NCBI GenBank assembly: GCA_002269645.1
Contig: NIVC01003195.1
Location: forward strand, 48,632 to 112,631
From: Macrostomum lignano
Taxonomy: Eukaryota
DNA length: 64,000 nt
Direction: 5' to 3'
Part shown: positions 10,701-54,979 of the stretch, piece by piece
Layout: every line of letters begins with the position of its first letter
Position numbering within the stretch: position 1 is the first letter of the stretch
Notes under the pieces: generated by a model
The model's input: only the letters and a program-made list of their open reading frames with translations
Database searches by the model: none
What the model was told of the DNA's origin: nothing
Program-made: the position numbers and the translations under genes

Positions 10701-11373
10701 AGAAACTGAGGATCTGGGAGACTGGCCCAGCAACTGAGGATCTGGGAGGCTGGCCCAGCAACTGAGGATCTAGGAGGCTGGCCTAGAAACTGAGGATCTG
10801 GGAGACTGGCCCAGCAACTGAGGATCTGGGAGGCTGGCTTAGAAACTGAGGATCTGGGAGGCTGGCTTAGAAACTGAGGATCTGGGAGGCTGGCTTAGAA
10901 ACTGAGGATCTGGGAGGCTGGCTTAGAAACTGAGGATCTGGGAAGAGTGAAACAGAGATAAAGCAAACTCACCCGCTGCTGATCATCGCTGCGATACCTC
11001 AAGCCAAAATAGTCCTTCTCTTGCAGGTTGCCAATTACTTCGCACACCTTTTCGAAAATACCCTCGCCGAAAGTGTCCACCTGGTTGAAATTATTGATAA
11101 ATATTTTATCATTTCTTCTTATGATAAGTATTTGGTTCATTTTTAGTACAGTACAAGCAATTTATTGAGTAAAATTCAACTTTTACTATTATGCACAGAG
11201 TATAATAGAATAAATATACTTGATTTTAATGTTTATTAAAGAAAACCACTTACATGAAACTTGAACTCTAAAGGCTTGTCCTCATGCAGAAGGCTAACTA
11301 TGCACTGGAACTCTCCAATAGATTCTTCTTTCTTTTTGGTTGGCAGGTGCAACTTTTTCAATAATGATGGCAT
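592..11373 (-). CDS. FERM (band 4.1) domain protein, FRMD3/FRMD5-like, 3' incomplete. Exons (minus): 11254-11373, 10973-11080, 10218-10260, 10048-10129, 9869-9969, 9461-9587, 8613-8700, 8139-8227, 7495-7561, 2240-2328, 592-672; continues beyond base 1
   Basis: All 11 exons have GT/AG ends with compatible phases. The spliced product reads MPSLLKK..FQCIVSLLHED / FEKVCEVIGNLQEKDYFGLRY / RWLE / FRVKHYPPHP / YLLFCQLKRDLLHARLY..LAACIVQAEFGDFD / FLSKAFSLDTYGIDP / LGFKCESRAAASALWAWSLEQQMFYT / SSFRFS. These are the FERM-N, -M, -C and FERM-adjacent motifs. Subfamily assignment is from recalled similarity only. Confidence 0.92.
700..2112. repeat. Degenerate ~21-22-bp minisatellite (CAAATTGCTCAAATCTCACTCA) filling a FERM intron
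   Basis: Direct tandem copies. All long + strand ORFs here are translations of the repeat. Confidence 0.95.
2485..3778. repeat. 27-bp minisatellite (TTTTGAGGGGCGATTCCTAAATGGCAG), about 48 copies, intronic
   Basis: Direct tandem copies. Confidence 0.97.
4706..5125. repeat. (GACA)n tract followed by GACACTAATA-type short repeats
   Basis: Visible periodicity. Confidence 0.9.
5955..6677. repeat. 83-bp tandem repeat, about 8-9 copies, same family as 1-270
   Basis: Direct tandem copies. Confidence 0.95.
7640..8095. repeat. ATCA-rich degenerate repeat (ATCAATCAATCAAACTAAC...), intronic
   Basis: Visible periodicity between FERM exons. Confidence 0.85.
8760..9410. repeat. 31-bp minisatellite (GGGGAGATTTCAGACACTGGCTCAGTTTCAG), intronic
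   Basis: Direct tandem copies with variable G-run length. Confidence 0.95.
10305..10942. repeat. 28-bp minisatellite (GAGGATCTAGGAGGCTGGCCTAGAAACT), intronic
   Basis: Direct tandem copies. Shares a 25-nt core with 58780-59175. Confidence 0.95.
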
Positions 11374-12969
11374 TTTATATTATAAATATATATTTCAGAT
11401 CTATTGACATGCAAATAAAATAGACTCAATTCTAAAATAAAGCAAAAAAATTGTATCTATGAATAATATAGCTTTCTTGGTAACAAATATCATCATACTA
11501 CCTTGTATATATTTAAATATATAACAAAGATAAAATGTATCAATTGACAATTACCTACTTAGGCTATAAAAAAGGATACATTGAAATAAATTGCCTTATA
11601 TAATAAAAATCATGATAAAAAAGCCTCAAGATTATTATGGCTATATTTAGAATCAAACTAAGGCTTATGATTACTATATCTAGAATAGATTAAACTAGCA
11701 TTTAAAATAAAATAATATATTCATATTTTATATACATATTAATATATATATATATTTATACCTTTAAACTTAAACTTTTAATGCCTTATTTCAAAAGTGT
11801 TATTAAGTATAACAATTTTATATAATGATATAAATATATAGGTTTCTAAATATAACTTATATAATATAAGAATAATGAAATATTCTTGTATTAAATAAAA
11901 ATAAGGTACATACATACATATTATACTATTTGCTGTAAGATTTCGTATAAAGTTAAAAAATTGAAACATAGCAGAAAGCATCATTTTATATTAGATTAAT
12001 TTAATCTAAATATAGGTAATTCTATAATAATTTAGAAAAGTTAATGAAAATGGGAATAAAATAATGCAAGATCATAAAACTTGACTAAGTCAAGTGAGCT
12101 ACCTCTTGCCACAAACAGTGAAAAAGTTTTCGAATACAGACAAATGTATTCTGACTATTGTATAGTTTAGGCCTATTGCCCTATTGAAAATTTGAAAATA
12201 TTGACTAACTAAATTAATTACTTAAACTTTTAAAGTAAAGATGCCTAACTTTCAAACACAATCAGATTACAATGTATTCAATATAGTTACAGATGTAAAA
12301 TTTATTGAAAAATCAACAACAAGTTCAACTGTTAAAAGCTAAGAAATAGCAATAAACAAAAGCAATAAACTAGTATTCAGTAAGAACTACAATATTCAAT
12401 CAATCACTATCAATGTCGTATCAATAACTAATGCCAAGTATGTTAAAAATAAATATCTCATACAAGTCACCAATGAAGCTAAAGCCTTACTCTACATCGA
12501 ATGAAAAAACAGATCTTAATGATACTATATTATAATGAATCATATTAATAACTGCAGGACAGTAGTGCAGTACAGTATAAATATGAATAAATAACAGTTT
12601 CAAGAGGAAATCGAATAATTGATTCTTCGATAACACAGGACCGAAACATATTACTTGAAGCTAAGATTTATCACAAAATAGTTTAAAGTCATAGTTTTTG
12701 TCAATACAAAGGTTTTATATTATAGAAAGTTTAACTGATTTTTACAGTATTGTTTAAATAATTTATAAGAAAAAAGCTCGGAAGAAGCACAAAAGTTTGT
12801 TTCTTACAATTCACGACCCTGTCGACTTTTGTCCACAGAAGTTAAAACAGTGGTTCGACAGTGCAATATTAAGATACTCGTCGTACTCTTCCTATTGATA
12901 AAAGTTATATACATAGCTCGATTTAGATATTTTTTAAACCTGTAAATCAGTAAGAACTAATTCAAAGTC

Positions 12970-15906: not shown

Positions 15907-16181
15907 GACGGCCAAACCTACTAGCGAGAGAGTTTTAAAGATTTACGAGTAAAATGCAGCGCATTGAAAACGTACAAAGCGATAAAGTAGACATACTAAT
16001 AAACAAGTGCACGTACACGTACGCTCTTAAGTATCGTTTGTCAGGCATGCTGCCAGGGACCAATGGGGTCCCTGGGCTGGCTAAAGTACATATAGAGCTG
16101 ATTCCAGTGGCTATGGCGTCTATCGGCGCTGATGTCTCCCTCAAAATGGATGGTGCCCGCTTAAATAAAATCTCTTGGATG

Positions 16182-17964: not shown

Positions 17965-18467
17965 AGGCTGGGGACTGGTTACAAAGGCTGGACACTGGTT
18001 GCTAAGGCTGGACACTGGTTGCTAAGGCTGGACACTGGTTACTAAGGCTGGACACTGGTTACTAAGGCTGGACAAGGCTGGACACTGGTTGCTAAGGCTG
18101 GACACTGGTTACTAAGGCTGGACACTGGTTGCTAAGGCTGGACAAGGCTGGACACTGGTTGCTAAGGCTGGACACTGGTTAATTACTAAGGCTGGACACT
18201 GGTTGCTAAGGCTGGACACTGGTTAATTACTAAGGCTGGACACTGGTTGCTAAGGCTGGACAAGGCTGGACACTGGTTGCTAAGGCTGGACACTGGTTGC
18301 TAAGACTGGGAATCGGTTGCTAAGGCTGGGGACTAGTTGCCAAGGCTGGCGACTGGTTGCCAAGGCTGGGGATTGGTTGCTAAGGATAGGCATCGGTTGC
18401 TAAGACTGGGCATCGGATGCTAAGACTAGGCATCGGTTGCTAAGGCCGGGGACTGGTTGCTAAGGCT
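17965..18467. repeat. 20-bp minisatellite (GCTAAGGCTGGACACTGGTT), downstream of UPF1
   Basis: Direct tandem copies that degenerate toward the right. Confidence 0.93.
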
Positions 18468-18903
18468 TATTTTAAGAGTGATTAGTTGTTCACTTGTGAA
18501 TTAAATGGTAAAGGATTAAAAAAATTGTAATAAGCTGACTCACCAAGAACCTTTGCTCACGTTAAGAAACGAGTTACAAGCCAAGCCAGTGCTGACTGAA
18601 CAAGCGCTGTCAGACATTTTAGCAGAACCGCCGCAAATAATGAAAAAAAGTCGAAAAAAAGAAATCAATCATCAGTCATCGGGAGTTCTTCTTTCCAGGG
18701 CTCGCCGCTTGAAACCTCCGACCGAACTTCGGGCGTTTTTAGTACCTCGCAAACAAAGCTCCCCCTGCAGTCACGTCTAGCTATATATAGAAAGAAAACT
18801 ACCTCAGCCAGTTGCGCCAGCCGACGCCTAACAAGAACAGATTATTGCTGAACGCCGATTTGGGGTTGCAAGCGCCTTTCCAATTGCATGGTTGCGAACA
18901 AAC

Positions 18904-21900
18904 TCAGAACTGGGACAGCGGAGCGTGCTGGCTCAGGCCAGCCTGGCTAGCCTGCCGATCGCCCTGATAGGCCGAGTCCTGGCTAAGCATGGCGTCCGCT
19001 TGCGATTGGCCCGGATTATGCTGGCTTCTCCCGCCAGCTGCGTACGAGTCCTGGCTGAAACCGACGCCGATGCCGCTGCCGCCGCCGCCGACAGTCTGGG
19101 AGAAACCGGCCAGACTCAGGCCTAGCTGAGACTGCGGCTGAGTCAGCATCTGCGATGCGCCCGACATGTCAGAGCCAGTGGCGCGCGGCTGCGCCGGACC
19201 GGCCTGTCGTTGATGACGCTGGCCTCGATTAGGCGGCGGCATGGGCGGCCCGCCTGGGTATTGCGACACGGCGTAGGCGCTCGGATGCACCTGTTGCATT
19301 AGCAGGCCAACCGGGATGGGCAGGTTGAGGCCGGCGGCCGCCTGATAGGCCCGGTGCGACCCGATCATGGCGATCGGATCGTGCGGCCGCGGCGCGTACG
19401 GCCCGCCGCCGCCGCGGGATGGCGGGGTCCCTGCTGGTAATGCGAAGGACCGGACAGGCCGCCGGGGTAGCCACCGGAGTAGCCACCGCCCCCACCGCCG
19501 CCGCTGCCGCCTGGTCCTCCGGAGAAGCCGAAATATTCGCGCGCGTCGAACATTGTGGAGTTCATGAATCTGGGAAAGAAATGATGGAGCAATGATGTCT
19601 GACAGACTCTGGCTACATTTTTCAAATAGGAACACCAATCCATTTTTCGCCCGTGGAACTACCAAGGGAGGGGGGAATTCCACCCCCCTCTCTGGCCTGT
19701 CAAGATATTCAACGATTCTGCCAGAAGGTCGGATTTACAGCCCTGTGCGCCAATTAGCACTGCGCCTCAGTGCAGCCTTGCCAAGCCTCCAAATTTAATC
19801 AGCTCGTCGAACACACGTGTCTGCATCAGCCCTGACTTCGTTGGTCACTGGCCTTCAGCCAGGTGGAGCTTCTGAACATTCAACAGGTGACACCAGGTGA
19901 CTATGGACACGCTGCAGCGAACTCCTCTAGTTTCGCTGATCAAGCCGACAGTGGGCATTTACTGGGCAACCCTCAACTGCTGGTACCCCCCCCCCCCTAG
20001 AAGTTCTACTGTTAATTCGCAGCGTGGTTAGTGCACGAAAATTGGGTTTGGGGCTTCTCGTGAGATTCCCACTGATGAGAACCGAAGCTCTAAGGCATAG
20101 AGGGTGTAGGGAGCATCAAACGTACAGTTTTGTATAATACAGTAATAAAGTTTGATTACCTTCCGCCCGGATTGGCCTGATTAATGAGCTTCTTAGGCTT
20201 AGGAAATTGCATCAGCGACTCTTTCAGATTGTTTAGCGGGCCTTCGGTTAATACGCGCAACTCTTTGTAGCTGACAAGCAGATGATGCCAGAGAGGCTGC
20301 TTAGACAGCACCTTCGGATTGCCGATGATCACCAGGCCGTACTTGGCCCGGGTCAGAGCTACGTTGAGTCGGCGAGGATCGTTCAAGAAGCCGATGCCCT
20401 GGTGCTCGTTGGCGCGAACGCAGGACAATATGATGAAATCCTTCTCCCTGCCCTGGAATGCATCCACGCTGGCCACCTCGATCTCTAAGTAGACTTTCGC
20501 GTTCAGGGTGGCGTTGTATTGAAAGTACTGGGCCAGGTAGGCGCGCTGGCCTTCGTAGGGCGTGATGACGCCAATGGCCGTGGGATCGATACCGGACTTG
20601 AGCAGCCTGGTAACCACCTGCGGATTATGGAATTAAACTTAGTTTACATTTATTGAACTGTCATTACAGTAAGAGGAGACACAGAGGCAGGAGCTGGAAC
20701 AGGTAAGAGGAGACACAAAGACAGGAGCTAGAATAGGTGAGAGGAGACACAAAGACAGGAGCTGGAACAGGTAAGAGGAGACACAAAGACAGGAGCTAGA
20801 ATAGGTGAGAGGAGACACAAAGACAGGAGCTGGAACAGGTAAGAGGAGACACAAAGACAGGAGCTAGAACAGGTGAGAAGACACAAAGACGGAGATCCGT
20901 CATGCACCGTCATGCATAGTCAGACATAGTCAGCATAGTCAGACAAGATACGCAACTGGGACAATAAACAACTGACGGATGCCACCAACCTTCTCCACAT
21001 TGGCAGCCTCGGTTCGATTCAGATAAGACGTGCCAGAGCCGGCAATTTCCTCTTGTCCGGCTGTACAATAAAACATCAGAGGCTTGTCCGGCTGCGGCCA
21101 GGGAAAATCTAAGCCTGGGTAGGCTCGGTCCTGGGCTGTGACGCCGTTCTGCAGGCTGCCTTCGTAGAAAATGTTGGACGGGAAGGCGGACAGGGCCGGG
21201 TGCATGCGGTATTGCACCTGAAAGCGGGGTAAGTGGATATGGGGACTGTGAGGGTTTCCATACTCGGAAGTGTACCCTAGACTCGCAATTCTGCCCATTC
21301 CGCCGACTCCTGAGCATATGTGTACATGAATGATGCTTCTGCAAAAATCTCACCTGCAATCGGATAGGCCTGGTGCCCAGCACTACCAGCCGTTCAAACA
21401 GAGACTGACTGAGCCCGGCAGCGGCTGACCGCTTGCACATGACAACTGGGCCGAGCTGGCAGTGATCGCCAACCAGCACCAGCTGCCGGCAGCCTGTCAC
21501 AATGGGTATCATGCACTCGGGCTCAGTAGACTGAGTAGACTCGTCAATCAATACGCAGCGGAATTGTAGACGGGCAATACGAGGATCCCCAGCTCCAACG
21601 CAGGTGCAGCAGACCACATCAGCAACGGCTAGCAGTTCCCGCTCGCACTGACGCCTCAGCTGTCTGTAGCGCTTCTCGTCTGCCAGAGCCAATTCGCCCG
21701 CCTCGTCTTTCAACTGCTGAAGCTTCTTTAATTCGGGAAATCCCTCAACATTGCGAGCCTGCTCGTGCAGCGACAGATAGGAGACCGGACTGTCGATTGC
21801 TTCGCGCGATTTAGCGCACAGCCTGACCACTTTTAGGCCGGTCTTGTGAATCTTCTCAGTCAGCTGGTCAACTGCTATGTTGCTCGGGGCGCACACCAGC

Positions 21901-24900
21901 ACCTGGCCTTGGTTGAGCTTGGACAGGTGGTATACTATTGTAGCCGAGGTTAGAGTCTTGCCCGTGCCTGGCGGGCCTTGAATAAGGCTTAGCGGTCGCT
22001 GCAGAACAGTCTTGACAGCGTAAACCTGATCCGAAGTGGGGTTGGCACAGCTTGTTAAACACCTGCCCAATTCTAAGGTAAACAATTATTCCAATTAAAA
22101 AACTATTGCCAATAATAGAATATCGTAGAATATATAACAGAATATAGCCAGTCTCCAGGTAAAACACACCTGATCAGACTCCCATCAAAGCCAGTCCCCA
22201 GGTAAAACACACCTGATCAGACTCCCACCAAAGCCAGTCCCCAGGTAAAACACACCTGATCAGAACTGCCATCAAAGCCAGTCCCCAGGTAAAACACACC
22301 TGATCAGAACTCCCATCAAAGCCACTCCCCAGGTAAAACACACCTGATCAGAACTGCCATCAAAGCCACTCCCCAGGTAAAACACACCTGATCAGAACTG
22401 CCATCAAAGCCAGTCCCCAGGTAAAACACACCTGATCAGAACTGCCACCAAAGACAGTCCCCAGGTAAAACACACCTGATCAGAACTGCCACCAAAGCCA
22501 GTCCCCAGGTAAAACACACCTGATCAGAACTGCCACCAAAGCCAGTCCCCAGGTAAAACACACCTGATCAGAACTGCCACCAAAGACAGTCCCCAGGTAA
22601 AACACACCTGATCAGAACTGCCACCAAAGCCAGTCCCCAGGTAAAACACACCTGATCAGAACTGCCACCAAAGCCAGTCCCCAGGTAAAACACACCTGAT
22701 CAGAACTGCCACCAAAGACAGTCCCCAGGTAAAACACACCTGATCATAACTGCCAACAAAGCCACTCCCCAGGTAAAACACACCTGATCAGAACTGCCAA
22801 CAAAGCCAGTCCCCAGGTAAAACACACCTGATCAGAACTGCCATCAAAGCCAGTCCCCAGGTAAAACACACCTGATCAGAACTGCCACCAAAGACAGTCT
22901 CCAGGTAAAACACACCTGATCAGAACTGCCATCAAAGCCAGTCCCCAGGTAAAACACACCTGATCAGAACTCCCATCAAAGCCACTCCCCAGGTAAAACA
23001 CACCTGATCAGAACTGCCATCAAAGCCACTCCCCAGGTAAAACACACCTGATCAGAACTGCCATCAAAGCCAGTCCCCAGGTAAAACACACCTGATCAGA
23101 ACTGCCACCAAAGCCAGTCCCCAGGTAAAACACACCTGATCAGAACTGCCACCAAAGCCAGTCCCCAGGTAAAACACACCTGATCAGAACTGCCACCAAA
23201 GCCAGTCCCCAGGTAAAACACACCTGATCAGAACTGCCACCAAAGACAGTCCCCAGGTAAAACACACCTGATCAGAACTGCCAACAAAGCCACTCCCCAG
23301 GTAAAACACACCTGATCAGAACTGCCAACAAAGCCAGTCCCCAGGTAAAACACACCTGATCAGAACTGCCATCAAAGCCAGTCCCCAGGTAAAACACACC
23401 TGATCAGAACTGCCACCAAAGACAGTCTCCAGGTAAAACACACCTGATCAGAACTGCCATCAAAGCCAGTCCCCAGGTAAAACACACCTGATCAGAACTG
23501 CCATCAAAGCCACTCCCCAGGTAAAACACACCTGATCAGAACTGCCATCAAAGCCAGTCCCCAGGTAAAACACACCTGATCAGAACTGCCATCAAAGCCA
23601 CTCCCAGGTAAAACACACCTGATCAGAACTGCCACCAAACCCAGTCCCCAGGTAAAACACACCTGATCAGAACTGCCATCAAAGCCACTCCCCAGGTAAA
23701 ACACACCTGATCAGAACTGCCATCAAAGCCAGTCCCCAGGTAAAACACACCTGATCAGAACTGCCATCAAAGCCAGTCCCCAGGTAAAACTCACCTGACT
23801 GTGATTGAGCTCAGGCAGACCAGGTGCAGAGAACCGCTTAGGCAGTTGGCACTTGAACACAATATCGTCAGTGTCGTGCCCAAGCAGTTTGTGATAGATA
23901 TGAGAAGTGACGCAGTGCTCATCGACGGCAAACTTTTTTAGGGCCGATTGCATTCGATCGAAGCTGATGCTTTTCCAAACGTATTCTACCGCGAAATTGT
24001 GCTGGCATTCTATCGGCGTGCCGGCGTTGTTCTTCAACTCGATGGCCACATCGTCGCTGTGATTGTCGGGTATCTTGATGACGTTTCCGACGCCAACCCA
24101 AGGCTTGGCCGAGTCGCCCATATAGCGAAGTCGCAGCTCGTCGCCGTGCATAATTTTTAATTCTTCGTTAGCGCGAGAAAATTGAAAATAGGCTATTCGC
24201 TTTTTATTGAGGCCCATGTCCCAGCGCACGCTGATGCTTTCCTGAGTCTGAGACTCCTTCAGCCGGCGGTCGTACTCTGCCTCCAGTTTAACTAGCGGGC
24301 CCAGTATGTTCTGATACTGATAGGCATCCTGGTAGCGCAGCGTCACCCGATTCGGCTCCTCGTCTACGCCCGGCTTCTCCAGATCCTCTAGCGTGGCGGC
24401 CGGGTTGCTTTTCCACAGTTCCTCCAGCTTGTTCATCTGGGCGGCGCTCATCTGCCTGGCCCGCATCTGCTCCTCCGACGAGGGCACCTTCACCTGCGGA
24501 TCGTAGGGTGGGGTCGGATCAGTGTGACAGTTGGTGGACAAGCATGTCAATCAGTGACAGCTGGTGGACAAGCATGTCAATCAGTGTGACAGCTGGTGGA
24601 CAAGCATGTCAATCAGTGTGACAGCTGGTGGACAAGCATGTCAATCAGTGTGACAGCTGGTGGACAAGCATGTCAATCAGTGTGACAGCTGGTGGACAAG
24701 CATGTCAATCAGTGTGACAGCTGGTGGACAAGCATGTCAATCAGTGTGACAGCTGGTGGACAAGCATGTCAATCAGTGTGACAGCTGGTGGACAAGCATG
24801 TCAATCAGTGTGACAGCTGGTGGACAAGCATGTCAATCAGTGTGACAGCTGGTGGACAAGCATGTCAATCAGTGTGACAGCTGGTGGACAAGCATGTCAA

Positions 24901-27900
24901 TCAGTGTGACAGCTGGTGGACAAGCATGTCAATCAGTGTGACAGCTGGTGGACAAGCATGTCAATCAGTGTGACAGCTGGTGGACAAGCATGTCAATCAG
25001 TGTGACAGCTGGTGGACAAGCATGTCAATCAGTGTGACAGCTGGTGGACAAGCATGTCAATCAGTGTGACAGCTGGTGGACAAGCATGTCAATCAGTGTG
25101 ACAGCTGGTGGACAAGCATGTCAATCAGTGTGACAGCTGGTGGACAAGCATGTCAATCAGTGTGACAGCTGGTGGACAAGCATGTCAATCAGTGTGACAG
25201 CTGGTGGACAAGCATGTCAATCAGTGTGACAGCTGGTGGACAAGCATGTCAATCAGTGTGACAGCTGGTGGACAAGCATGTCAATCAGTGTGACAGCTGG
25301 TGGACAAGCATGTCAATCAGTGTGACAGCTGGTGGACAAGCATGTCAATCAGTGTGACAGCTGGTGGACAAGCATGTCAATCAGTGTGACAGCTGGTGGA
25401 CAAGCATGTCAATCAGTGTGACAGCTGGTGGACAAGCATGTCAATCAGTGTGACAGTTGGTGGACAAGCATGTCAATCAGTGTGACAGTTGGTGGACAAG
25501 CATGTCAATCAGTGTGACAGCTGGTGGACAAGCATGTCAATCAGTGTGACAGGCAGAGGGGGCCACACACAAAGCCGTGATGATCAGTATGACAGGCAGA
25601 GGGGGCACACAAAACTGTGACAATAGCATAGAAAATAAAACCCAAAGCCTCCCACCATCCAGGACAGAAACTGGCGATCCTGGATAAGCGGCTCCCACAG
25701 ATTGGAGTCCAAATTCATGTCCTTCTTCTGCGAGGCGCACGGCTGTCTGCAGAGCAGCACAACCACGGAATCTGCTTTAGCCGGAATGTAGCCCAGCAGA
25801 AAGACATTCTTAGATCCGCAGACGTAGCACTCCAGCTCAGTAGCGCCAAGCGGACTGTCCTTGTGCAGACTAACAGTCTTAGTCTTAGCCCGGACCAGAT
25901 GATTAACAATATGCGATCCGCTAGTATTGCCGCGGCCATTGCAGAACCATTTCTGTGTGGAATTGCACAGCACAACGCAGGCCGGATCGTGAATGCCGCA
26001 GTAGGCGCAGGCGTGCTCAGGCAGGTCGCGGGTGTACAACGCGCCGCCAGCGCCAACACCGACGGCATTCTCGGCGTCGTCTTCGTCCTCGAAGGTTAGA
26101 CCGTTCAGGTTCAGCGCGCCTGCGGCCGAGTCAATGTCGGCTACAGCCGAGGCCAGGCCAAAACCGTCCGCCTGGGTTGCATTAGGATGGATCCAATCGA
26201 TAAGGCAATTATTTACTATGCTTATATATTACTATTATTGATAAGTAGCAAGAAAAGAATGTGTTGCATCCTTTTTAAAATTTTGTGCTAACCCAGCATC
26301 ATGGGTGGTATTTTGGGACCCTTATCTTCTTCTAATGTCTAAGAATATACAGAGGTTAGATGGGATCAAAATCTTTAGGATTGGGCAAGATCATGATCTT
26401 ATCCTATTTTACAAAAGTTACTTAAGTAAGTTACACATTAGAGTTAGAGCTAGGATGGGATTCTAATCCTGATTCCAAAATTGAATAGAGACATATAGAG
26501 ATTGAGAATATATATTTTGATTATGAAAAAGCTTGTCTTGAGCTTTATTTTAGCCCTATCAATCATCTGAATATTAAATATTATTTTGAAACATAGTTTC
26601 AGACTTAAGAGATTAAGAAAAATTTCAAATTGCATCCTAAAATTAAAAGTCCAAAAATTATATTGTCAAAGGAAAAAAGTTTTTACTAGGGGTTGGACAA
26701 GATCTTAATCTTAATCTTGATCATCAAGATCTTGGCACTTTTTAAAATCTTGATATTGGTTTCAAGATCTTGAAAAAAGTCAATATTTGCAACTACAGAC
26801 TTTGTAACTATGATATTCTTCAGTTATGGCAACCACCCAGTTTGCTTCCTGATATTACTTTAAAGTTTGAATTAGTGCTGCAACATAGTACCATGGTATA
26901 AAAAATATCTGGCCAAAAAGGATAGGAAATGATATCAGAAAATCTTTTAGCCTCTAGCTCATCTACTACTTTATCACTATCTATTACTCTATCATTTTAT
27001 CTACTGCTCTATCAATTGCTACTTTTACTGCCCTATCTATTGCACTATCTACTACTGCAGCTATTGCTCCATTTACTTCTATCTAGTGCTCAAAGGCACT
27101 ATATTGTGGCACCAATTCAAACTTGAAAATAATATTGCAAAAGAAACTGGAGCCTTGCCAATATTATTATACTTAAATCATAAATCTCAAGCTCAAACTT
27201 TAAGCTCAATAATTAAAACAATCAAATCGTTTTTTATTATCATCACTGTATTATATACATTTAACAAGTAACAATAATAACATTGAAAAATAGTGCAAAT
27301 AATAGTGTAAATAGACCTACTAGATGCCTATAGTTTAGAACAGTCTATATATACCCAAAAAAACTATTTTTTGTATATGTCAATGTATGCTGAGTACATT
27401 ATTTAAGCAAAGCTTCAAATCAATCAATTTAATAACTGTATTAGTAGAATAGTGATTTTTATATTTAATTTCAATTAGATGAAGTCAAAATCTAGAAATA
27501 ATTGTAATTGTATATATTTTATGTTTATATATAAAAAGCAAAATTTGTGATTTTTGTTATAATTTTAAATCATTACCTTGTAGAAAAGATGGGAATGAAT
27601 TTTGCATCAAATAGTTCTTAAATTTTACCATTATAATGCATGGATGACTATTGTTACCATTATCAATAATATGATTTTTTAATTTTTGGTGCATATCATA
27701 GACCAAGATATTAAATTTGTATACCAAAAGCCCAAAATCACTTTTTGAATGCCAATATATATGCCAAATTTCTTGAGAAATTTTCACTATACATGCCTTC
27801 TTCTGGACTATGGCTAGATGCTAATTAGACTTAATCTTGAATATTAATTGAATTTTAATTATCTCAAAAGTAGAAATCTAAAGTCTTGAAAATCTTGAAA

Positions 27901-30717
27901 ATTTGATATTATCTGACCCTTAGAAAATGTGCTATTGGATTTCTATCTTCCAAATATTTGTATTTTCTATTCTGCAATTCAGCTGCATACTTTTCAGTTA
28001 ATTGACTCCCTTTGTCTATTATGCTTTTCCCTATAGACAATCCCAACTGTTAATTTGCCAGACATTTTAGCTACCCTTTGCTATGTTAATATAAATACAA
28101 GTTCAACTTGTGGCTTTAGCTTTAGCCTGTCACTTCTGTTTCTCTTCTACTAATTCTTTCTCTACTAACTGCTTGTTCTCATATTAGTTTATTGTCAACT
28201 TTGACAAATTGGTAGCAATGTCAGCATTACCATGGTCATCATGTGATTAAGAACTGACCTATCTAGCAACCAGATCTAATAATCCCAGAATTACCACAGT
28301 ATAGCCTCTATTAAAGTGGAGCAGCTGCATAGCAAAGCCAATGACCTGCTACCAACTGCTTCAGTAGCCACAACATCTACTCTTCCCACTGCTCCTTTTA
28401 CAACTTTGATCCTTGTAATAGCTCCCACTGCCTCAATCAATATTAGTGCCCTCTTGACTATAATGACTAATATGATGCAACAAACCAATAGCTCATGCAG
28501 TAGCTTGCAGCTAATGCAACATCAACATTGGCATTGGTCATGCTGCTTGCTCCTAAAGACTGCAATCTAGCTAGCCTTATTAGCTTGGCCATCTAATAGA
28601 AAGTCTAGCTACTAACTTTCAATAGCATGGATTAATTAAATTCCCTAGATTCTAAGTGGAATTTATTCACCATATTGACAAAGCCACACCTAGTGATATC
28701 TATAAGCTCAAGGCACTCTGCAGTCTTCTCTCTGGCTTGGCACTCTGGAAGCTTGGCGCACTCAATGTTTGCCAGCCTAACACTTATGCTAAAGCTTGCA
28801 GCATCCTCTTGGCCAACTCTGCCAATGCTTAGAAGAAGAAAAACGTCTTCTAACATTTTTTGCTCTCTACTATAGCTCTACCTCTAGCCTAGACAAGCTG
28901 GGGAATTTCACTGATGCTTTCTATCTCACCACTGGCTAGCTACTCCACCTAGGTAAGCTTGCTTGCACCTATGACAGCCATATTTACACACTTTGGAACC
29001 ACTTTCTGCTCCAGTTCTAGATCAAAATCTAAAATATCTGCATTGCCAATAAGTTATATCTTGTGCCTACCATGGCCCAGCTTCAGGGCCACCTCAATTG
29101 CAAGCTGAAAATGCTTAGCCACTTCCACTATTCCACTGGCTACACTTTTCACTTTTGCCAACCTTTTGGGCAATGCCAATTCTAGATTATCACAAGCCCA
29201 TAGTACCTGAAAGTGCCTATTTTTAGGTACCTCTCAACTTGACCTACTCTTTGCACTGATATTACATCTTGCTTGACTATGTAGCTTAGCTCCAATGTTA
29301 GCCAAAAGGGGAACTAGGAGTTTTAGTCCTTACTTTGACAACCTAGCACAAGCTACTTTGCACTAACAAGGTCTGCAATCCTAATGCCTACCTAAAGATT
29401 ATTTGCAAAGAGCTTATAGGTTTCGATCTCTAGGCTCAAATTGGACATTGCTAGCTTATTAAGGCCTTTGCCTCCAAATAGCTAACTGTCCTAGTTTATA
29501 TAAGGCTTACCTACTATCAACCTATCCAAGGACCTTTTCAATACCTTCAAAAGTGTCACCAATAGCATCTCAAAGATGTAATAAATAGTGTTTTGTTATA
29601 TGTATTTGGCAAATCTTAAAATTAAAATAGATTAATTAAAACACCTATAAACAATTTAAACATCTTAATACATGTCTATCTAGTATCTATTTTCTATATA
29701 GATATAAAACTTTCAAAGTGTGAGAAAATTTAAATACATACTATTAATTTTCCCTTGTTATTGAAGTGGCTATTACCAGAGTTATCCTCATTTGTTAGTG
29801 AAAAGGTATGAAGTCATTTATTTGCCACCTTATTGTCTACTGGCAAATGAAACAACTTTTCAAAAATAAAAAATAAAATATAGCTACATAACTTATAAAG
29901 CTATTTTTAATAAGATATTTTGAGCCATGCATAGATTTTTTCTATGCTGCTTTTTTATATGCATAATTGTTTATTGCAATATTTCAAAGAAATTTGATAT
30001 TTAATTTAAACATTTATTGAAAAAAGTTTTATGACAGGCAAGTTTATTAGTGAATTAGATGGCAGAGTAGTTTGCAATTGAATATGATTATGATTGGCTA
30101 GCTGTTGCGAGCATTGTTATGATCCCTGACCCTACCCCATCTAATTTAATGATAATAATGCTAAAGTTTATTAATAATAAACAAAAAGTTAGTATTTAAT
30201 ATTTTGTTAGCAGATAAAATGACTGCATTGTATTTTTGCAGACAAGCGTGGCAGACAAACTGGAAGCAGACAAAATAACTATCAACCATCAAAAGGACTG
30301 TTACTATAAAACAATAATCAATATGACAATAGAAAAATTGCATAGATTGCCTAGTAAAGTGCATTGATTGCCCTACCCCTATCCCCCATACTTTTTTCTG
30401 GTACATACTATGCTGCCTTCCTGGCTCTAGCCATGGCCATGGGATTAGAGTTGCCAATAAAGGTACTCTTTAGTATCCTATTTTGGCATTAGGGCCTACA
30501 TTAGGCTTACCTGATTTTGACTTTCCAATGTTGATCCAGGAGGTCCATGTGAAAATTTCAGAGCATCATTTTGAGAATATTGTGAATCTGCTGTGACTGT
30601 AAAATCTTTATACTCAAAGTCAGTTCCTTGTGTGTCTGCAGGTAAATCATCCGGGTCTTCAAGGTCAAAAAAAGTTAAAGACTGTGAATTAGGACCATAT
30701 GGCTTTGTTGTTGCCAT
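18904..30717 (-). CDS. UPF1: UPF1 / regulator of nonsense transcripts 1 (SF1 RNA helicase). Exons (minus): 30511-30717, 25656-26171, 23795-24493, 21354-22025, 20990-21217, 20160-20617, 18904-19569. The last exon has an apparent -1 frameshift near 19425
   Basis: N-terminus [23 protein letters not shown]; CH zinc domain [32 protein letters not shown]; Walker A GPPGTGKT; [22 protein letters not shown] and [11 protein letters not shown] helicase motifs; SQ-rich tail ending [14 protein letters not shown]. All junctions are GT/AG with matching phases. Confidence 0.97.
20665..20890. repeat. ~34-35-bp repeat (GAGACACAAAGACAGGAGCTGGAACAGGTAAGAG) in a UPF1 intron
   Basis: About 6 tandem copies in two alternating variants. 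Confidence 0.9.
22150..23790. repeat. 44-bp minisatellite (CAGGTAAAACACACCTGATCAGAACTGCCATCAAAGCCAGTCCC), about 37 copies, UPF1 intron 3
   Basis: Direct tandem copies that begin at the donor site itself. Confidence 0.97.
24520..25550. repeat. 32-bp minisatellite (GTGTGACAGCTGGTGGACAAGCATGTCAATCA), about 32 near-identical copies, UPF1 intron 2
   Basis: Direct tandem copies. Confidence 0.98.
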
Positions 30718-32084
30718 CGCGGCTGCTGTGATTTTTTTTCTAATTCTGAAACACAGAACAAGTCACAGATTGCTTTATTATCAATTTGTATAATAAAAGA
30801 CAACGTAGCTTAAAATAGAAATGTCGTCAAAAAGAGTTCTAGAGATATAGTATATCTCTCACTACTCGGCAAACTGAAATTTGTCCTTTTTTACTAGTAT
30901 AAACAAATCAATAAACCTAAAAATTGTAACAGAAAGCATAAATTGTCCTTAAAGTTAAAATATCGACAAAATCGTTTATAATATTTCTAAAGTATTCGTT
31001 TTTAATTTTTTTAATATATTGTTTAAATTTCGACTTTTGGCAGTTTTTTAATAATAATTCTTTTAAATGCGAATTTCTAATTGATCAACCATACGTTTAC
31101 TTAGAGCGAGTACACGTTTTCCCTCTTTTCTCTCCTTCACTCCAAATTGTGAAATTCCCCTCTCATTCTATCTCTCTCACACACTTTCTTAATTTCCTTC
31201 TGTTTCTGAAATATTATAGACTTATATTATAGACTTCTCAATATGTGGAAGTGTGAATTGAATACCACGCGCACTAGTCGATCTTTCCCTCACACACGCC
31301 GAACTCCTCATTGTTCACTTTTCTTACATTATAATTTAAAATAAAATATTTCTCAAAATTGGAGTCCATGAAAAATTGAGCTAAAGTTTCTAACTTTTTG
31401 TGAGTAAACAAATAATTCGATTCATATAATTAGTGCTTTAGAGAGCGTTGCTGCAGCGACGAGCCAATTGAAATGACTGAGATCTTTCGTCATCAGGGCT
31501 TCGAAATCTAAATCTGGAACTCCCTTCTGTATCACTACCACCGCTAAAAACTATGAACTAATAGTAGTTCATATGAACTGCTATGAACTAACTACAGTAG
31601 ATAAACAGATTCGGTCGGGCATAACTCTTAAACCTTATAGGCGCCGGCGGCGCTCATTTAATTAAACAGTTCTAATTCCATCTTCCTACTTTGACTATGA
31701 ATATCTTCCTACTTTACCTGATTGCAGTGATTAGCTGGCTAACTAACATGGCTTCGCATTTTTCAAGCCGGTAAAGTGATCGTTTCGATAACCTTTCGCG
31801 GCAGCTAGGCTATTTAATTTGAAGTAGCGTTCCAAAGGACTGCGTTCTGCTGAACCATTCAGTTTGTGTTAGCTGCTATAATCTCCATCTCGAACGAAAG
31901 AGAACTTTCTTGATTCAACCAATATCCTGGGATAGTGTCAAAGCTATCTTTGGTTCCATCCTTTGGGTTCTATAAGCTGCATAGCATCAATTCATTACTT
32001 TTCTGGCATGTAGCTCATATTTCCCCATCTACTAACAGTAGAAATATGAACATTTTGCTGTCTAAATTTGGGTTAGCGGCTTGA

Positions 32085-32138
32085 TTTCTAGAAATTTCCA
32101 GAATGAAGTCAGTGGGCAAGAAAATTCGAGAAGCTTCC
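32085..32138 (+). promoter_or_regulatory. Two perfect heat-shock elements (4 alternating nGAAn units each)
   Basis: TTC-ta-GAA-at-TTC-ca-GAA at 32086-32103 and GAA-aa-TTC-ga-GAA-gc-TTC at 32120-32137. Both lie just upstream of a TATA box and a small HSP gene. Confidence 0.92.
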
Positions 32139-32150
32139 TCAGTGCCAGTC

Positions 32151-32157
32151 TATAAAA
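32151..32157 (+). promoter_or_regulatory. TATA box (TATAAAA) of the small HSP gene
   Basis: Consensus TATAAAA about 13 bp after the second HSE. It implies the real start codon is 32280, not the ORF-track start at 32103. Confidence 0.85.
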
Positions 32158-32279
32158 GCGAGACAGCTGGATCCGAGAGTGAGGCAGGATTGGAGCACAC
32201 AAAGCAACCGCAAGCAAAGCAATCTCAAGCAAAGCGAATCAATCGCCAAACTCTATCATTTACAAGCGACACAGCAAGC

Positions 32280-33104
32280 ATGTCTCTGTGGATCGCACCG
32301 AGCAACGTGTACACGCCGTTCTCGCACTCTCTGCCGCTCGTGGCAGCCATGAGCGAGCTGGACGACTGGCTGACGCCGGAGTATGACCCGCTGGTGCAGC
32401 TGCTGCGGCACAGAGGTCCGAGGCGACCGCGTCAGTGGAGCCGGACTGTGGACCTTCGCGGCTTCTCGCCGAAGGACGTGTCGGTGAAGCGGGAGGAGCG
32501 GAAGGTGCGGGTGGTGGCGCGGCTGGAGAACGGCGAGGACGTGACGGAGGTGAAGCGGACGGTGGAGCTGCCGGAGGAAGTGGACGCAGAGAAGCTGAAC
32601 AGCGGCTTCACCCGGGACGGCATGCTGGTGCTGCAGGCGCCGTTCAAAGAGCAGCAGAAGCAGCAGCAGCTGAAGCAGCAGGAGCAGCAGCAGCAGCAGC
32701 AGAAACCGCAGGGCGACTCCGTGTGGGACGAGCTGCGCGGCCTGCTGCGAGGCGACCTGCAGTCTGAGGGGTCCGGCCAGCTGGTGGAGGCGGACGATGG
32801 CAGCAAGCGGTTCAAGGCGGAGCTGTCGGTGCGCGAGTTCAAGCCGGACGAGATTCGCGTGCGACAGCAGGGCGACTGCGTGCTGGTGGAGGCGGAGCAC
32901 AAGGAGGAGGCCGGTGGGCAGCGGGTCCACAAGCGGCTGGAGCGAATCTACCAGCTGCCCGACGGCACCAAGCTGGACCAGGTGGTGAGCAAGCTCAGCC
33001 ACGATGGCCGGCTGTGCATCGAGGCGCCGTTCGAGGCTCCGGCAGCTCGGGAGCAGCCGCAGCTGAAGGACGTTCCCATGGAAACGGAGAAGGCCGCAGA
33101 GTGA
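32280..33104 (+). CDS. Small heat-shock protein (HSP20 family) with two alpha-crystallin domains, p40/Tsp36-like, 274 aa, intronless
   Basis: Domain 1: VDLRGFSPKDVSV..KRTVELPEEVDAEKLNSGFTRDGMLVLQAP. Domain 2: LSVREFKPDEIRV..RIYQLPDGTKLDQVVSKLSHDGRLCIEAP. A Gln-rich linker joins them, and a C-terminal IXI/V-like DVPME motif follows. HSE/TATA promoter upstream. Confidence 0.93.
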   Translation: MSLWIAPSNVYTPFSHSLPLVAAMSELDDWLTPEYDPLVQLLRHRGPRRPRQWSRTVDLRGFSPKDVSVKREERKVRVVARLENGEDVTEVKRTVELPEEVDAEKLNSGFTRDGMLVLQAPFKEQQKQQQLKQQEQQQQQQKPQGDSVWDELRGLLRGDLQSEGSGQLVEADDGSKRFKAELSVREFKPDEIRVRQQGDCVLVEAEHKEEAGGQRVHKRLERIYQLPDGTKLDQVVSKLSHDGRLCIEAPFEAPAAREQPQLKDVPMETEKAAE

Positions 33105-33554: not shown

Positions 33555-34680
33555 GCCCTCTACACCCTTCAGTAGGAGATCTGTACAGTGTGCATCCTCC
33601 AGTAGGAGTCCTACACCCTTCATTAGGAGCTCTGTATATACAGTGTGCATCCTTCAGTAGGAGTCCTCCTACACCCACCCCTTCAGTAGGAGCCCTCCTA
33701 TACCCCTTCAGAAGGAGCCCTCTTATACCCCCTCAGTAGGAGCTCTCCTATACCCCCTCAGTAGGAGCCCTCCTATACCCCTTCAGCAGGAGCCCTCCTA
33801 TACCCCCTCAGTAGGAGCCCTCCTACACCCCTTCAGTAGGAGCCCTCCTACACCCCTTCAGTAGGAGCTCTGTACAGTGTGCATCCTTCAGTAGGAGTCC
33901 TTCTACACCCCTTCAGTAGGAGCTCTGTACAGTGTGCATCCTTCAGTAGGAGTCCTCCTACACCCCTTCAGTAGGAGCTCTGTACAGTGTGCATCCTTCA
34001 GTAGGAGTCCTCCTACACCCCTTCAGTAGGAGCTCTGTACAGTGTGCATCCTTCAGTAGGAGTCCTTCTACACCCCTTCAGTAGGAGCTCTGTACAGTGT
34101 GCATCCTTCAGTAGGAGTCCTTCTACACCCCTTCAGTAGGAGCTCTGTACAGTGTGCATCCTTCTATAGGAGTCCTCCTACACCCACCCCTTCAGTAGGA
34201 GCCCTCCTATACCCCTTCAGAAGGAGCCCTCTTATACCCCCTCAGTAGGAGCTCTCCTATACCCCCTCAGTAGGAGCCCTCCTATACCCCTTCAGTAGCA
34301 GCTCTGTACAGTGTGCATCCTTCAGTAGCAGTCCTCCTACACCCCTTCAGTAAGAGCTCTGTACGGTGTGCATCCAAGGACTACTAGACTTGAAGTGCTC
34401 CTAGTGGTCCTTGTGTGCATCCTTTAGTAGGAGTCCTCTTACACCCTTCAGTAGGAGCTCTGTACAGTGTGCATCCTTCAGTAGGAGTCCTCCTACACCT
34501 ATCAGTAGGAGCTCTGTACAGTGTGCATCCTTCAGTAGGAGTCCTCCTACACCCCTTCAGTAGGAGATCTGTACAGTGTGCATCCTTCAGTAGGAGCCCT
34601 CCTATACCCCCTCAGTAGGAGTCCTCCTATACCCCTTCAGTAGGAGCCCTCCTATACCCCCCACAGTAGGAGCTCTGTAC
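33555..34680. repeat. Modular minisatellite built on a CTTCAGTAGG core with 3-4 recurring spacer modules (55-bp higher-order unit)
   Basis: The core recurs every ~25-30 bp, and the spacers recur rather than being unique. Confidence 0.9.
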
Positions 34681-36384: not shown

Positions 36385-36640
36385 CGCCCGTACTTGATAG
36401 CGAAAAGAGCCGTACTCGGATGGTTCCGGGGTCTGGAAAGTATACCAAATGAAGAAGCTACGAGCGTACTTAGGGAAGGAGGCCTAGACCCGATGGAGGT
36501 TTAACGGATGTTCTTAGATCGCGAAGACTGGAGGAACTGGATTAAACAACGCGTCAGGCAAATGGAAGCCTGGGAGAAAATGCAAGTGAACAAGACAAGA
36601 CGCCCGACACGACCATACAAAGAACACCATCACCAGCAAC
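36385..36640 (+). mobile_element. Probable non-LTR retrotransposon (RTE-like) ORF2 C-terminal remnant
   Basis: The frame reads AKRAVLGWFRGLE..LREGGLDPMEV*RMFLDREDWRNWIKQRVRQMEAWE. This resembles the DRxxWR-containing C-terminus of RTE-clade ORF2 (recalled similarity) and has an internal stop. Confidence 0.5.
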
Positions 36641-45935: not shown

Positions 45936-48576
45936 CTATTCTATTTCTAATTTCGAAAATCTTTTGGTAACACACAATTCGAATCAATAATTTTAAACGC
46001 AACCGTTATGACAAGAAAGATACAACAAAGTTTTACAATATATTAGTAGCAATGAGTAAAGAAAAAAATTCAAACGTTTAAACTCTTTAAAAAAGGTTTT
46101 ATAATTATTTTGGTTTAAAATTTTTGCGATTGCTTATAAAAAGCACAGAAAATTAAATCAATGGACGAAAAGAAATAACAAGCAAAAATTCTATTGACTG
46201 TCACAGGGTATAGGTCTATTAATATATTAGAGACACGGTTGAAAATTAATTGATTCTAATAGGTAAAAACATTTTGTGTTTACTAACTCTTTGCTATAGA
46301 AATGGCTAGTATTTTATTATTTAGATACATTTCGTGTGTGGGGCCTTCAATCTATGTTTAAAGAACCAAGAAATTTGCTGCACATAAACAGTTTCTAATA
46401 AAAATAGTAAGGGCCTTATCTTTAAATAGATAAAAAATAAACGATAACTAATGTTTTGGCTTTGTATTAGGGAGGAGTTTTTTGCTAGGCCTAAGTAATT
46501 TTTCTATATATTGATAGTGATAGGCTAGGCTAGCCAATTCCCTTGGTAGGGCCTAGTGGCTGAGGGAGGCCTAATATCACAATCAAAATGGCCAGTGTAT
46601 TAGACAGTATGGATCTAGTACTTTTAATTTAATTATAAAATATGGAATTTAGAAAAAAACATTTAAAACAATGGAAATACAATAAATTTTTCTTTTTTCT
46701 TTTAATTAAGCATAAAATATAAATAAACTAAAATGTTAGATTATTAGAGAAGTAAAAGTAAAGATTATCTCAATATTTTATTCAGCTTATAATAATGTAA
46801 TGTATAGTGTGTTATATGGCATTTGTATAGTATTAACCTATACAAAAGATAATTTAGAAAATAGAATAATATAAAAAACTAGGCCCTAGTATTAAATATA
46901 CTAAATCTCTAATATTTGTATGTCTATAACGCTCTAGAGATTGCAATTCTTCACCGATTTTCATCGTGTTTTTGCCAAAATTACTAGCTAAGGCTATAAA
47001 AAGAGCTGTCTACCAGCTAGCAAATAATTTTTTCTCATTTCTCATATTGGTATGCAATGTAAATAAAGCAATTGTCTTGCCAACAGGGATATATCTAAAA
47101 AAAACGAGACACTCGGGACATGTCCCCCTTTAGAAAGAGGTTTTTATTGTTTTTATATTTTATTTTTAGTTTTATTGCTAATATTTGAGTATGCACTGTG
47201 CAGTTAAATTTAGCTTAGAAGCAAATATACTAAAAAGCCCCTATGATATTGTTTTTTTGAATATTTAATCCTTTTAACAATGAGCTATAAGCTCATTGAA
47301 ATTTATATATCAATTTACACACTTGACATCTTTTGGTAAAGAAATATTGAAAATTGGTTGAGCTATTTGGCAGATAAGCAATTGCAAACATATAAGATTA
47401 TTATTATTAGTAGACCTTTACTAAGGCTATTTGATTACTAGGGCCTATATGATATAGGCCCTTATATAAATGTTTCTTTTATAATTAGGCCTCTAATAAA
47501 AAGAAAGATATTTATATGAATAGTATGCAAACTATTAATATAGGTATAGTTATTTAAATATATAGTAATAGCTATTCCTAGACTTATCTAAATATTTAGA
47601 TATAATTAAAAGTTAACCTATATCATTTTTCATATTGTTGATCTAGTCTTAGGAAAGTGACCAATTTTAGTATTTATATATAACATTTTTTATACTTGTA
47701 TATCTTTTGAAGGAAATAACATTCTGTTGAAATTAAAAAAGCAATAAAACTGTAAAATACTTATCTATATAGTGATACATTGCATTCAATTATGATTTTG
47801 CAATCAGTATATATGGAAAAATAGTGGGAAAGGTATGGATCAATTTTCCCACTATTTTTATGATTTCTTTATATTAAGGCAAAATGCTTTGTCATCTAGT
47901 ACTCTATCTATATTTTTAGGTAGGCATTTTTGTGACTTACCTTGGCTAGGCCCTAGATCAGCTAGCTTGGCTAGGTATTAGGCATATACAAAACTTTATT
48001 TTATCCTATAGTTGTGCAATAAAAATTCAGTTTTGTATTGTTTTTTTATTTTATAAGACCAAGCCAAAAATATATTTGCAAATGAAATGTTTTGTTCCTT
48101 TTTGAATCAAGTATATAAGTATATAACTATTCCTAACAAATTGCACTTAGACAGAGTGTGAATCCAGGATGCCATATAGCACTGTGAATGTGACATTTTA
48201 TAAAACCTTTGACTCAAATATTCTTTTTAATTTGTATAACCTGAATATTTATGGTTTAATTGGCTTAAACATTGGTTTTATAAACTAATGGCTGTAGCAA
48301 TATGCATTAAGTTTATTTATTCAACCTTATCTTTATGCACTGGCGCATAACTTGATAAAGAATTTCTGGAATAACTCTGGGAGTTGCGCACCTCCAAGTT
48401 GACCTACTAGGTGTCGAATCCTTGAGCTGAACTTTCTTAAACGCTCATTGACCTTGTGGCTCTTCCATCTTGAAGCAGTCTTAGTTGCTGTTCGGGCGCG
48501 CGCCTTATTACCATTGGCCAATCGCTCCGATGCGTAAAAAGCAGGCCTAAGCGCTTTATTTTGGAATTCTCTATAA

Positions 48577-54978: not shown

Positions 54979-54979
54979 T

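Follow-up and report, generated by a model that had tools for sequence, protein, structure and literature searches.

How a gene can lose nearly every CpG over its 5' end while the DNA on either side keeps its own is the question raised by UPF1 on contig NIVC01003195.1 of Macrostomum lignano, from which a stretch of 64,000 nucleotides (the window; coordinates refer to it) was analysed. UPF1 was located on the reverse strand by tblastn with a human UPF1 query. Between positions 26230 and 30717, seven CpG were counted where 120.3 are expected (observed-to-expected ratio, o/e, 0.06), together with 205 GpC (o/e 1.70), at a GC content of 0.33. A first-pass annotation had estimated by eye that the first intron contains about six CpG and exon 1 a single one, with GpC common and some 100 CpG expected; the exact count is six plus one, and the computed expectation bears out the estimate.

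CpG depletion at the 5' end of UPF1

The depleted block consists of coding exon 1 and of intron 1 minus the last 27 nt of that intron. In the void part of the intron, CpG is left at positions 27228, 28757, 28844, 29424, 30108 and 30247. The only CpG of exon 1 lies at 30652, and the nearest ones beyond the block are found at 26198 on one side and at 30718/30720 on the other. CpG loss in this 4.5-kb block amounts to approximately 94%, and none was lost in the neighbouring DNA. Under a binomial model, so low a count has a probability of about 1e-52 for p = 0.16, the flank rate, and of 5e-12 even for p = 0.05. Loss is even across 5' contexts, with ACG, CCG, GCG and TCG all at 0.07-0.10 in void blocks.

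Edges were determined by a two-change-point maximum-likelihood fit of the probability that C is followed by G, calculated across 25553-32100. It amounts to 0.0073 in the block, compared with 0.247 towards exon 2 and 0.152 towards the promoter. The edge on the exon-2 side was placed between 26198 and 26206 (support interval of two log-likelihood units, 26206-26271), and is thus sharp to within 65 bp. On the promoter side it was placed near 30651 (support 30591-30718), at most 130 bp from the ATG. The switch in composition is therefore as abrupt as had been claimed; its 3' limit, however, is at 26199 rather than at 26230, and the intron-1 acceptor follows 27 nt further downstream.

Local AT content does not account for the void. 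AT-matched DNA at 30721-31800, 12420-13980 and 45940-46441 has a CpG o/e of 1.05-1.36, and since such equally AT-rich flanks are CpG-normal, AT content is not the cause. In addition, the core of intron 1 (28201-29500) is void at a GC content of 0.415, which shows the void to be independent of AT-richness. The description of the AT-rich upstream DNA and of the later exons as rich in CpG is confirmed (o/e 1.2-1.3 at 30721-31800, 0.78-1.08 in exons 2-6), and low local GC is refuted as an explanation.

The depletion extends to synonymous sites of the coding sequence. In exon 1, which has one CpG where 7.2 are expected, GC content is 0.19 at third codon positions (GC3) and 0.47 at first and second positions (GC12), whereas GC3 is 0.63-0.74 and GC12 is 0.46-0.53 in exons 2-6; the reported change from A/T-ending to G/C-ending codons is thus real. 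The reading frame of exon 1 is intact and in frame with the later exons. Given a GC12 as in the other exons and a collapsed GC3, exon 1 has evolved in place as a functional exon; its synonymous positions alone are shifted, and protein-level selection is retained. A translational ramp as cause of the exon-1 codon usage is refuted: in six other genes of the window, GC3 over the first 69 codons is 0.48-0.68. Likewise, the void is not a property of all introns, as the unique introns 4-6 of UPF1 (intron 6 with about 24 CpG per approximately 590 nt) and a later intron of a FERM-domain gene (8 CpG per 380 nt) are CpG-normal.

The block is poor in repeats. No dispersed copies of it were found within the window, intron 1 has almost no tandem structure, its open reading frames (ORFs) gave no match to Pfam domains, and the block gave none to Rfam families. 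An inverted repeat at 26827-27160 is the sole repeat-like structure. Two G-runs on the UPF1 sense strand (30371-30388 and 30124-30139), both with GGGGTAGGG, lie early in intron 1; along with the skewed intron core they form quadruplex- or R-loop-prone sequence just 3' of exon 1. A 3' splice-site-like TTTCAG/AATTAG is located 29 nt upstream of the UPF1 ATG. In intron 3, an array of 44-nt units (22146-23798) starts exactly at the exon-3 donor, and each unit carries the donor-like CAGGTGTGT. In protein searches, the relatives of UPF1 did not exceed 67% identity, and UPF1 of M. lignano was not among them; a metagenome scan yielded a single UPF1 fragment, 53% identical.

Recurrence, base composition and substitutions of void DNA

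When scanned in windows of 250 bp, all non-tandem DNA of the 64 kb proved CpG-normal save three unique blocks, the one at UPF1 included (Table 1); at least six other genes of the window have no such block. The second block comprises the region upstream of exon 1, exon 1 itself and the short next intron of the FERM-domain gene, where CpG returns at exon 2. The third consists of two stretches, 46443-46929 (no CpG, 7.7 expected) and 47115-48343 (none, 21.2 expected), and is located upstream of a CpG-rich, CCAAT-bearing promoter-like region and of the ATG (48577) of an MPP8-like gene. It contains no recognisable exon and may be intergenic. Accordingly, the statement that the pattern recurs at two other genes clearly stands for the FERM-domain gene only, as the third block precedes a probable promoter. 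Other long CpG gaps of the window were rejected as instances of the same phenomenon: they are minisatellite arrays with CpG-less units.

Void DNA was also detected outside the window. Three M. lignano loci of 20.9 kb each (L002, L003 and L004), 98-99% alike, were reached via the small heat shock protein (sHSP) gene that neighbours UPF1 in the window. These sHSP loci have no UPF1 within 10 kb and thus offer no usable synteny. Void-type DNA is present at 15501-17500 and 19251-20000 of L004 and at 13001-14500 and 18501-20500 of L003, where no gene start is recognisable. Its dinucleotide ratios resemble those of the window blocks (CG 0.10 and 0.09, GC 1.63 and 1.77, CC 1.30 and 1.20, CA 1.10 and 1.12, AC 0.80 and 0.77, TA 0.99 and 0.99, respectively). 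Profiles of CpG-free trinucleotides correlate with r = 0.88 between the two sets of void DNA, compared to 0.54-0.59 with control DNA of either set. It follows that void DNA is not peculiar to UPF1 but forms a conserved compartment of the genome.

A motif, TAGG(S)CC or GG(S)CCTA (e.g. TAGGCCCTA), clusters at 46486-47949 in the third block. It was also observed in M. lignano void DNA, at 12710-14196 and 18559-19197 of L003 and at 15635-16273 of L004. It occurs 2.6 times per kb in the blocks, as opposed to 0.55 times per kb in the rest of the window, and is nearly absent from the UPF1 block. The clusters hint at a shared element.

Beyond CpG, the blocks have a vocabulary of their own. With the three blocks pooled, CTAG, CCTAG and GCTAGC, words that had been described as very frequent, occur at 2.3, 3.6 and 15 times expectation (CTAG at 0.6-0.8 times in control DNA). 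Further, TGGC (4.0-fold), GGCC (4.5-fold), TGCA (2.7-fold) and AGCT (2.4-fold) are in excess, GAAC (0.32-fold) and GTAC (0.54-fold) are depleted, and AC/GT stands at 0.75. Within blocks TAG/CTA is in excess and CAG/CTG in deficit. The ratio (CpA+TpG)/(ApC+GpT) is 1.30-1.59 in void blocks versus 0.99-1.00 in controls, and TpA/ApT is 0.96-1.07 versus 0.95-1.00. TpA o/e is 0.94-1.08 versus 0.85-0.93; the label TpA-rich originally given to the UPF1 block had to be dropped, as it reflects AT content. In CpG-free trinucleotide profiles, zones of the window correlate with each other at r = 0.64 and with control DNA at r = 0.29. Two candidate mechanisms were rejected: (i) CG-to-TA double conversion as origin of the CTAG-type words, because its predicted products TTAA and GTAC, which would arise from the TCGA and GCGC enriched in control DNA, are depleted; (ii) an AID/APOBEC-type dependence on the 5' neighbour, because loss of CpG does not vary with the 5' context, and AGC and TGC are in excess.

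Substitutions were compared between L002 and L003, over 9.8 kb of CpG-normal and 1.0 kb of CpG-poor, AT-rich DNA; the test covers one locus outside the window and 34 transitions, and the differences are unpolarised. In the CpG-poor stretch, transitions per site were 0.333 (6/18) at CpG and 0.083 at non-CpG sites (odds ratio, OR, 5.5; p = 0.004). In CpG-normal DNA, with 0.0053 at CpG and 0.0087 at the remaining G/C sites (OR 0.61), there is no hypermutability of CpG. Sorted by 3' neighbour, transitions in the CpG-poor stretch affected 33% of CG, 14% of CA (19/135), 6.3% of CT (8/126) and 1.4% of CC (1/73), versus 0.8% of CA, 1.5% of CT and 0.25% of CC in CpG-normal DNA. For CpA against CpT plus CpC in the CpG-poor stretch, OR was 3.5 (p = 0.0025). 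The comparison of copies that the annotation had proposed as a check thus returned an excess of transitions at CpG and then at CpA, in a small, unpolarised sample. Zone-specific hypermutation in M. lignano was rejected, as CpG-normal and CpG-poor parts are both 4.6% divergent, which means that divergence reflects copy history. L002 carries a 6.85-kb insertion (12463-19318) relative to L003 and L004, beyond which divergence increases from about 0.75% to 4.6%; insertion and jump indicate that the three M. lignano copies are mosaics of different histories. A mutation spectrum derived from units of tandem arrays was uninformative owing to register slips.

Possible origins of the void blocks

As the loss is CpG-specific, independent of AT content, sharply bounded and extends to synonymous sites, a regional regime of cytosine modification and deamination is the best reading. 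We give a probability of roughly 0.55 to long-term germline methylation of DNMT1/DNMT3 type, restricted to the blocks of a genome that would otherwise be unmethylated. Methylation as the cause, its action in the germ line and its targeting are what we infer from sequence. Macrostomid flatworms would possess an AT-rich, single-copy compartment in which nearly all CpG is gone and GpC is kept, amid CpG-normal surroundings. DNMT1/DNMT3-type enzymes would methylate the cytosines of these blocks only, in the germ line and over long times, and 5-methylcytosine (5mC) would deaminate to thymine, turning CpG into TpG or CpA until about 6% is left; unmethylated neighbours (promoter side, exons 2-7) would retain their CpG. 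With UPF1 exon 1 under protein-level selection, its synonymous sites would drift to block composition. Decay is probably increased by a weaker component outside CpG, chiefly at CpA.

The data agree with this reading: CpG o/e is far below that of AT-matched flanks while GpC is kept, and CpG was hypermutable inside the CpG-poor domain and not outside it, in the small unpolarised L002/L003 sample only. According to published reviews, M. lignano keeps DNMT1 and DNMT3 and has low-level 5mC (PMC11292947, PMC9246332), and a 2022 review gives the methylation pattern of free-living flatworms as unknown (PMC9246332). The 64-kb window carries no DNMT gene. The notion that cytosine modification also hits CpA, put forward in the annotation together with regional loss, was partly supported: the loss is regional and CpG-specific, and for CpA there is some support (p = 0.0025). 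Weak independent hints of a CpA component are the L002/L003 spectrum on the one hand and, on the other, a CpA/TpG shortfall and TpA surplus, compared with CpG decay alone, combined with the CAG/CTG deficit and TAG/CTA excess.

Several observations weigh against block-restricted methylation as a full account. Exon 2, 27 nt past the edge, is undepleted, which demands an unusually sharp methylation border. The substitution test rests on a stretch of about 1 kb, on 34 unpolarised transitions and on loci other than the window. Further, decay was simulated in silico by mutating every CpG of control DNA. This yielded TpA at 0.86 (observed 1.00) and CTAG at 0.87, and failed to generate the block vocabulary (CTAG 2.3-fold, GGCC 4.5-fold, GAAC 0.32-fold). 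Likewise, the zone-control correlation rose only from 0.29 to 0.36, and if every synonymous CpG decayed, GC3 of the UPF1 exons would drop from 0.68 no further than 0.505, compared to the 0.19 of exon 1. For CpA/TpG, o/e is 1.11-1.18 in blocks and 1.04 in controls, and complete decay predicts 1.32, so that the excess (1.11) falls below prediction. As vocabulary and GC3 go beyond simulated decay, something besides CpG decay shaped the blocks, either further context-dependent C-to-T change or a distinct ancestry. The CpA/TpG shortfall is compatible with further CpA-to-TpA decay or with different ancestry.

Among the alternatives, methylation anchored at the transcription start site (TSS), covering the first kilobases of certain genes and ending at exon 2, which was the main reading of the annotation, survives best, though we consider it unlikely. 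In its favour, a first coding exon and the intron after it lie within two of the three blocks, CpG is normal in later unique introns of both genes (UPF1 and the FERM-domain gene), and the UPF1 block begins within 130 bp of the ATG. A ruler of this kind is at odds with the third block, which is located upstream of the CpG-rich, CCAAT-bearing promoter-like region and the MPP8-like ATG, with the M. lignano void blocks that have no recognisable gene start, and with the absence of a block from at least six other genes of the window. Moreover, known animal gene-body methylation guided by H3K36me3 is 3'-biased and includes exons. Our preference is for a mechanism that recognises the block by its class of chromatin or sequence rather than by distance from the TSS.

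Somewhat less probable still is an origin without methylation in situ, in which the blocks were CpG-poor on arrival, as old transposon or repeat relics or as segments of a divergent homeolog or species. This would explain why their CpG-independent vocabulary differs from control DNA and is common to blocks and M. lignano void DNA, and the TAGG(S)CC clusters in the third block and in M. lignano void DNA could be taken in the same sense. Exon 1 of UPF1 and of the FERM-domain gene, however, lie inside blocks, in frame and coding for conserved protein, and the normal GC12 and collapsed GC3 of exon 1 imply evolution in place under purifying selection. Neither repeat copies nor remnants of transposable element (TE) proteins nor convincing terminal repeats were found in the window, and CpG sites in the CpG-poor DNA of M. 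lignano have remained hypermutable.

A repeat-induced C-to-T mutator acting mainly on CpA, as in fungal repeat-induced point mutation (RIP), had been offered as a second possibility in the annotation and is very improbable. Such a mutator would fit the enrichment of CpA-to-TpA differences in the CpG-poor DNA of M. lignano as well as the TAG/CTA excess and CAG/CTG deficit of the blocks. RIP would be indicated by (CpA+TpG)/(ApC+GpT) below about 1.03 and a TpA/ApT raised relative to unmutated DNA; in the blocks the former is raised to 1.30-1.59, the opposite of RIP, and the latter is near that of controls. The dominant target is CpG, with the order CG > CA > CT > CC and not CA > CT > CG > CC, the UPF1 block is single-copy within the window, and its coding exon is intact.

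Selection or structural constraint against CpG would suit the extreme cleanness of the void, and so would an artefact of sequencing or assembly; the consensus of long reads, for example, is known to be error-prone at methylated motifs, so that methylated CpG could be miscalled. Taken together, the two are as improbable as a RIP-like mutator, since no known reason for selection fits 4.3 kb of unique intron yet spares neighbouring introns, and since an artefact could not move GC3 from about 0.68 to 0.19 with frame and conserved residues kept, nor produce the same compartment in an independent M. lignano assembly.

Block-restricted germline methylation, if it is the cause, predicts where methylation is to be found: in a minority of CpG-void, AT-rich blocks, some of them on the first exon and intron of essential genes, and not in whole gene bodies. 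This would add a third layout of animal methylomes to the gene-body and transposon-only patterns, and would provide a natural case of a razor-sharp methylation border at an exon edge. It could also reveal a germline mutational trace of non-CpG methylation, and regional mutation bias would explain jumps of codon usage within a gene (GC3 0.19 versus 0.68). More tentative, and in our view possible rather than probable, is the specific proposal that the low-level methylation of macrostomids is confined to sharp AT-rich blocks, which can engulf exon 1 and intron 1 of housekeeping genes such as UPF1 but spare the exons further downstream, and that DNMT3-type methylation of CpA leaves a CpA-to-TpA footprint in the germ line, i.e., an inverse CpG island of a kind undescribed in animals.

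Other features of the window

Table 1. Void blocks and associated features, with positions in the 64-kb window.
Feature	Position	Strand	Remarks
CpG-void block, UPF1	26199..30717	(-)	7 CpG vs 120.7 expected; 207 GpC, o/e 1.7; GC 0.33
UPF1 coding exon 1	30511..30717	(-)	69 codons, phase 0; conserved UPF1 N-terminus; donor CAG/GTAAGC
UPF1 intron 1	26172..30510	(-)	4339 nt; unique sequence
UPF1 exon 2	25656..26171	(-)	CpG o/e 1.02; GC3 0.69; 25 CpG in first 200 nt, right after the void
GC-richer core of intron 1	28201..29500	(-)	GC 0.415; sense-strand GC skew +0.23; 3 CpG vs 53 expected
Inverted repeat	26827..27160	.	66-nt arms, 74% complementary, flanking a decayed 12-nt tandem array
Spacer, UPF1 ATG to divergent sHSP gene	30718..31800	.	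GC 0.33; CpG-normal, o/e 1.2-1.3
Second void block	11069..12416	(-)	2 CpG vs 18.2 expected; GC 0.23
FERM-domain gene, coding exon 1	11251..11373	(-)	MPSLLKKLHLPTKKK...FKFH; no CpG; joined exons 1 and 2 match Pfam FERM_N
Third void block	46443..48343	.	two stretches split by a 185-bp CpG-bearing islet

The sHSP gene (32103-33104, forward strand) encodes two alpha-crystallin domains and diverges from UPF1 in a head-to-head arrangement, the two ATGs being 1.4 kb apart. Its best PDB match is 2BOL, the tapeworm protein Tsp36, and the product is Tsp36-like. The closest database proteins are a Logan-assembled protein (82% identity) and BOX15_Mlig005128g1 of Macrostomum lignano (70%), matches that assign the window to a macrostomid flatworm. 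Upstream of the FERM-domain gene, five GACGTC sites (resembling cAMP response elements) are located at about 12965-13150 in CpG-normal DNA, 1.6-1.8 kb from the ATG; this cluster is a possible promoter of the gene. An ORF at 13983-15350 (reverse strand) encodes a membrane-protein-like product of 455 amino acids and is rich in GC3; it had no Pfam match and no homologue among 5.8 billion proteins. An exact look-up of two proteins of the window gave no match.

The islet within the third block (46930-47114) keeps four to five CpG. Among its motifs are GGCTATAAAAAG, which resembles a TATA box, and a perfect palindrome, GGGACATGTCCC. Possible identities of the islet are a small transcription unit and a protected regulatory element. 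The MPP8-like gene (48577-50841, forward strand) is a single exon encoding an N-terminal chromodomain and C-terminal ankyrin repeats, i.e., an MPP8 or HUSH-like architecture, and paired CCAAT boxes are found about 60 nt upstream of its ATG.

Minisatellite arrays crowd introns and spacers, among others at 715-2116, 8767-9366, 10301-10943, 22146-23798, 24518-25552, 33651-34673, 36637-38344 and 54227-55840. Eighteen of the 24 consensus units are without CpG (9 CpG observed, 33.8 expected), and the arrays at 2472-3779, 16171-16975 and 39034-39467 hold CpG at expectation; the arrays, too, are thus split into a void and a normal class. Those at 10301-10943 and 58787-59176 share TCCCAGATCCTCAGTTTCT, have the same orientation to their host gene and possess a 3' splice-site-like end, and a family of 83-nt units is present at both 1-275 and 5955-6703. 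The arrays seem to be dispersed and are possibly mobile. Searches of the window for a spliced leader (SL) RNA gene, tRNAs and Rfam families returned nothing relevant. The sole Rfam match at gathering threshold was a tRNA-like element at 62247-62316 (reverse strand, 35 bits), for which ARAGORN makes no call; the element, possibly a repeat derived from a tRNA, sits within a spurious ORF.

Comparison with known systems

In the mosaic methylomes of Ciona, oyster, cnidarians and arthropods, low CpG o/e marks historically methylated DNA beside CpG-replete DNA, as it would here, and the decay products are TpG and CpA. There, however, whole gene bodies including exons have an o/e of about 0.3-0.6, compared to 0.06 over exon 1 and intron 1 only in UPF1. 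With CpG-normal exons 2-6 and later introns, the gene does not fit canonical invertebrate gene-body methylation.

The chaetognath Paraspadella gotoi has a transposon-only methylome without gene-body methylation, and its low-complexity repeats are unmethylated; a transposon-only pattern is likewise reported for early nematodes and ctenophores (PMC12460157). A methylome of this type resembles the present case in that genes are largely unmethylated, and discrete methylated blocks would give sharp CpG-void patches, some of them intronic. The UPF1 block differs in that no TE hallmarks were found in it and that it contains a functional coding exon. Searched for features of a TE or repeat within the 64-kb window, it gave weak inverted repeats but neither copies nor Pfam domains.

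Holometabolous insects have a sparse, 5'-biased gene-body methylation that favours exons (approximately exons 2-4). The position just downstream of the gene start is shared, but in UPF1 depletion mainly concerns the intron, and exon 2 has its full complement of CpG. Mammalian DNMT3A/B prefer CG >> CA > CT > CC, and the between-copy transitions in CpG-poor M. lignano DNA follow the same rank order, in a small sample. In mammals, no clear germline mutational footprint of non-CpG methylation is known.

Fungal RIP likewise produces AT-rich, C-to-T mutated blocks with sharp edges. It requires duplicated DNA, has CpA as its first target, lowers CpA/TpG and fills coding sequence with stop codons. None of this was observed here: the RIP indices are negative, the UPF1 block is single-copy within the window and the frame of exon 1 is preserved. 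Finally, the block resembles vertebrate CpG islands as a sharply bounded, promoter-proximal domain whose CpG contrast would stem from a difference in germline methylation. The polarity, however, is inverted, with a CpG-empty 5' intragenic domain set in a CpG-replete background.

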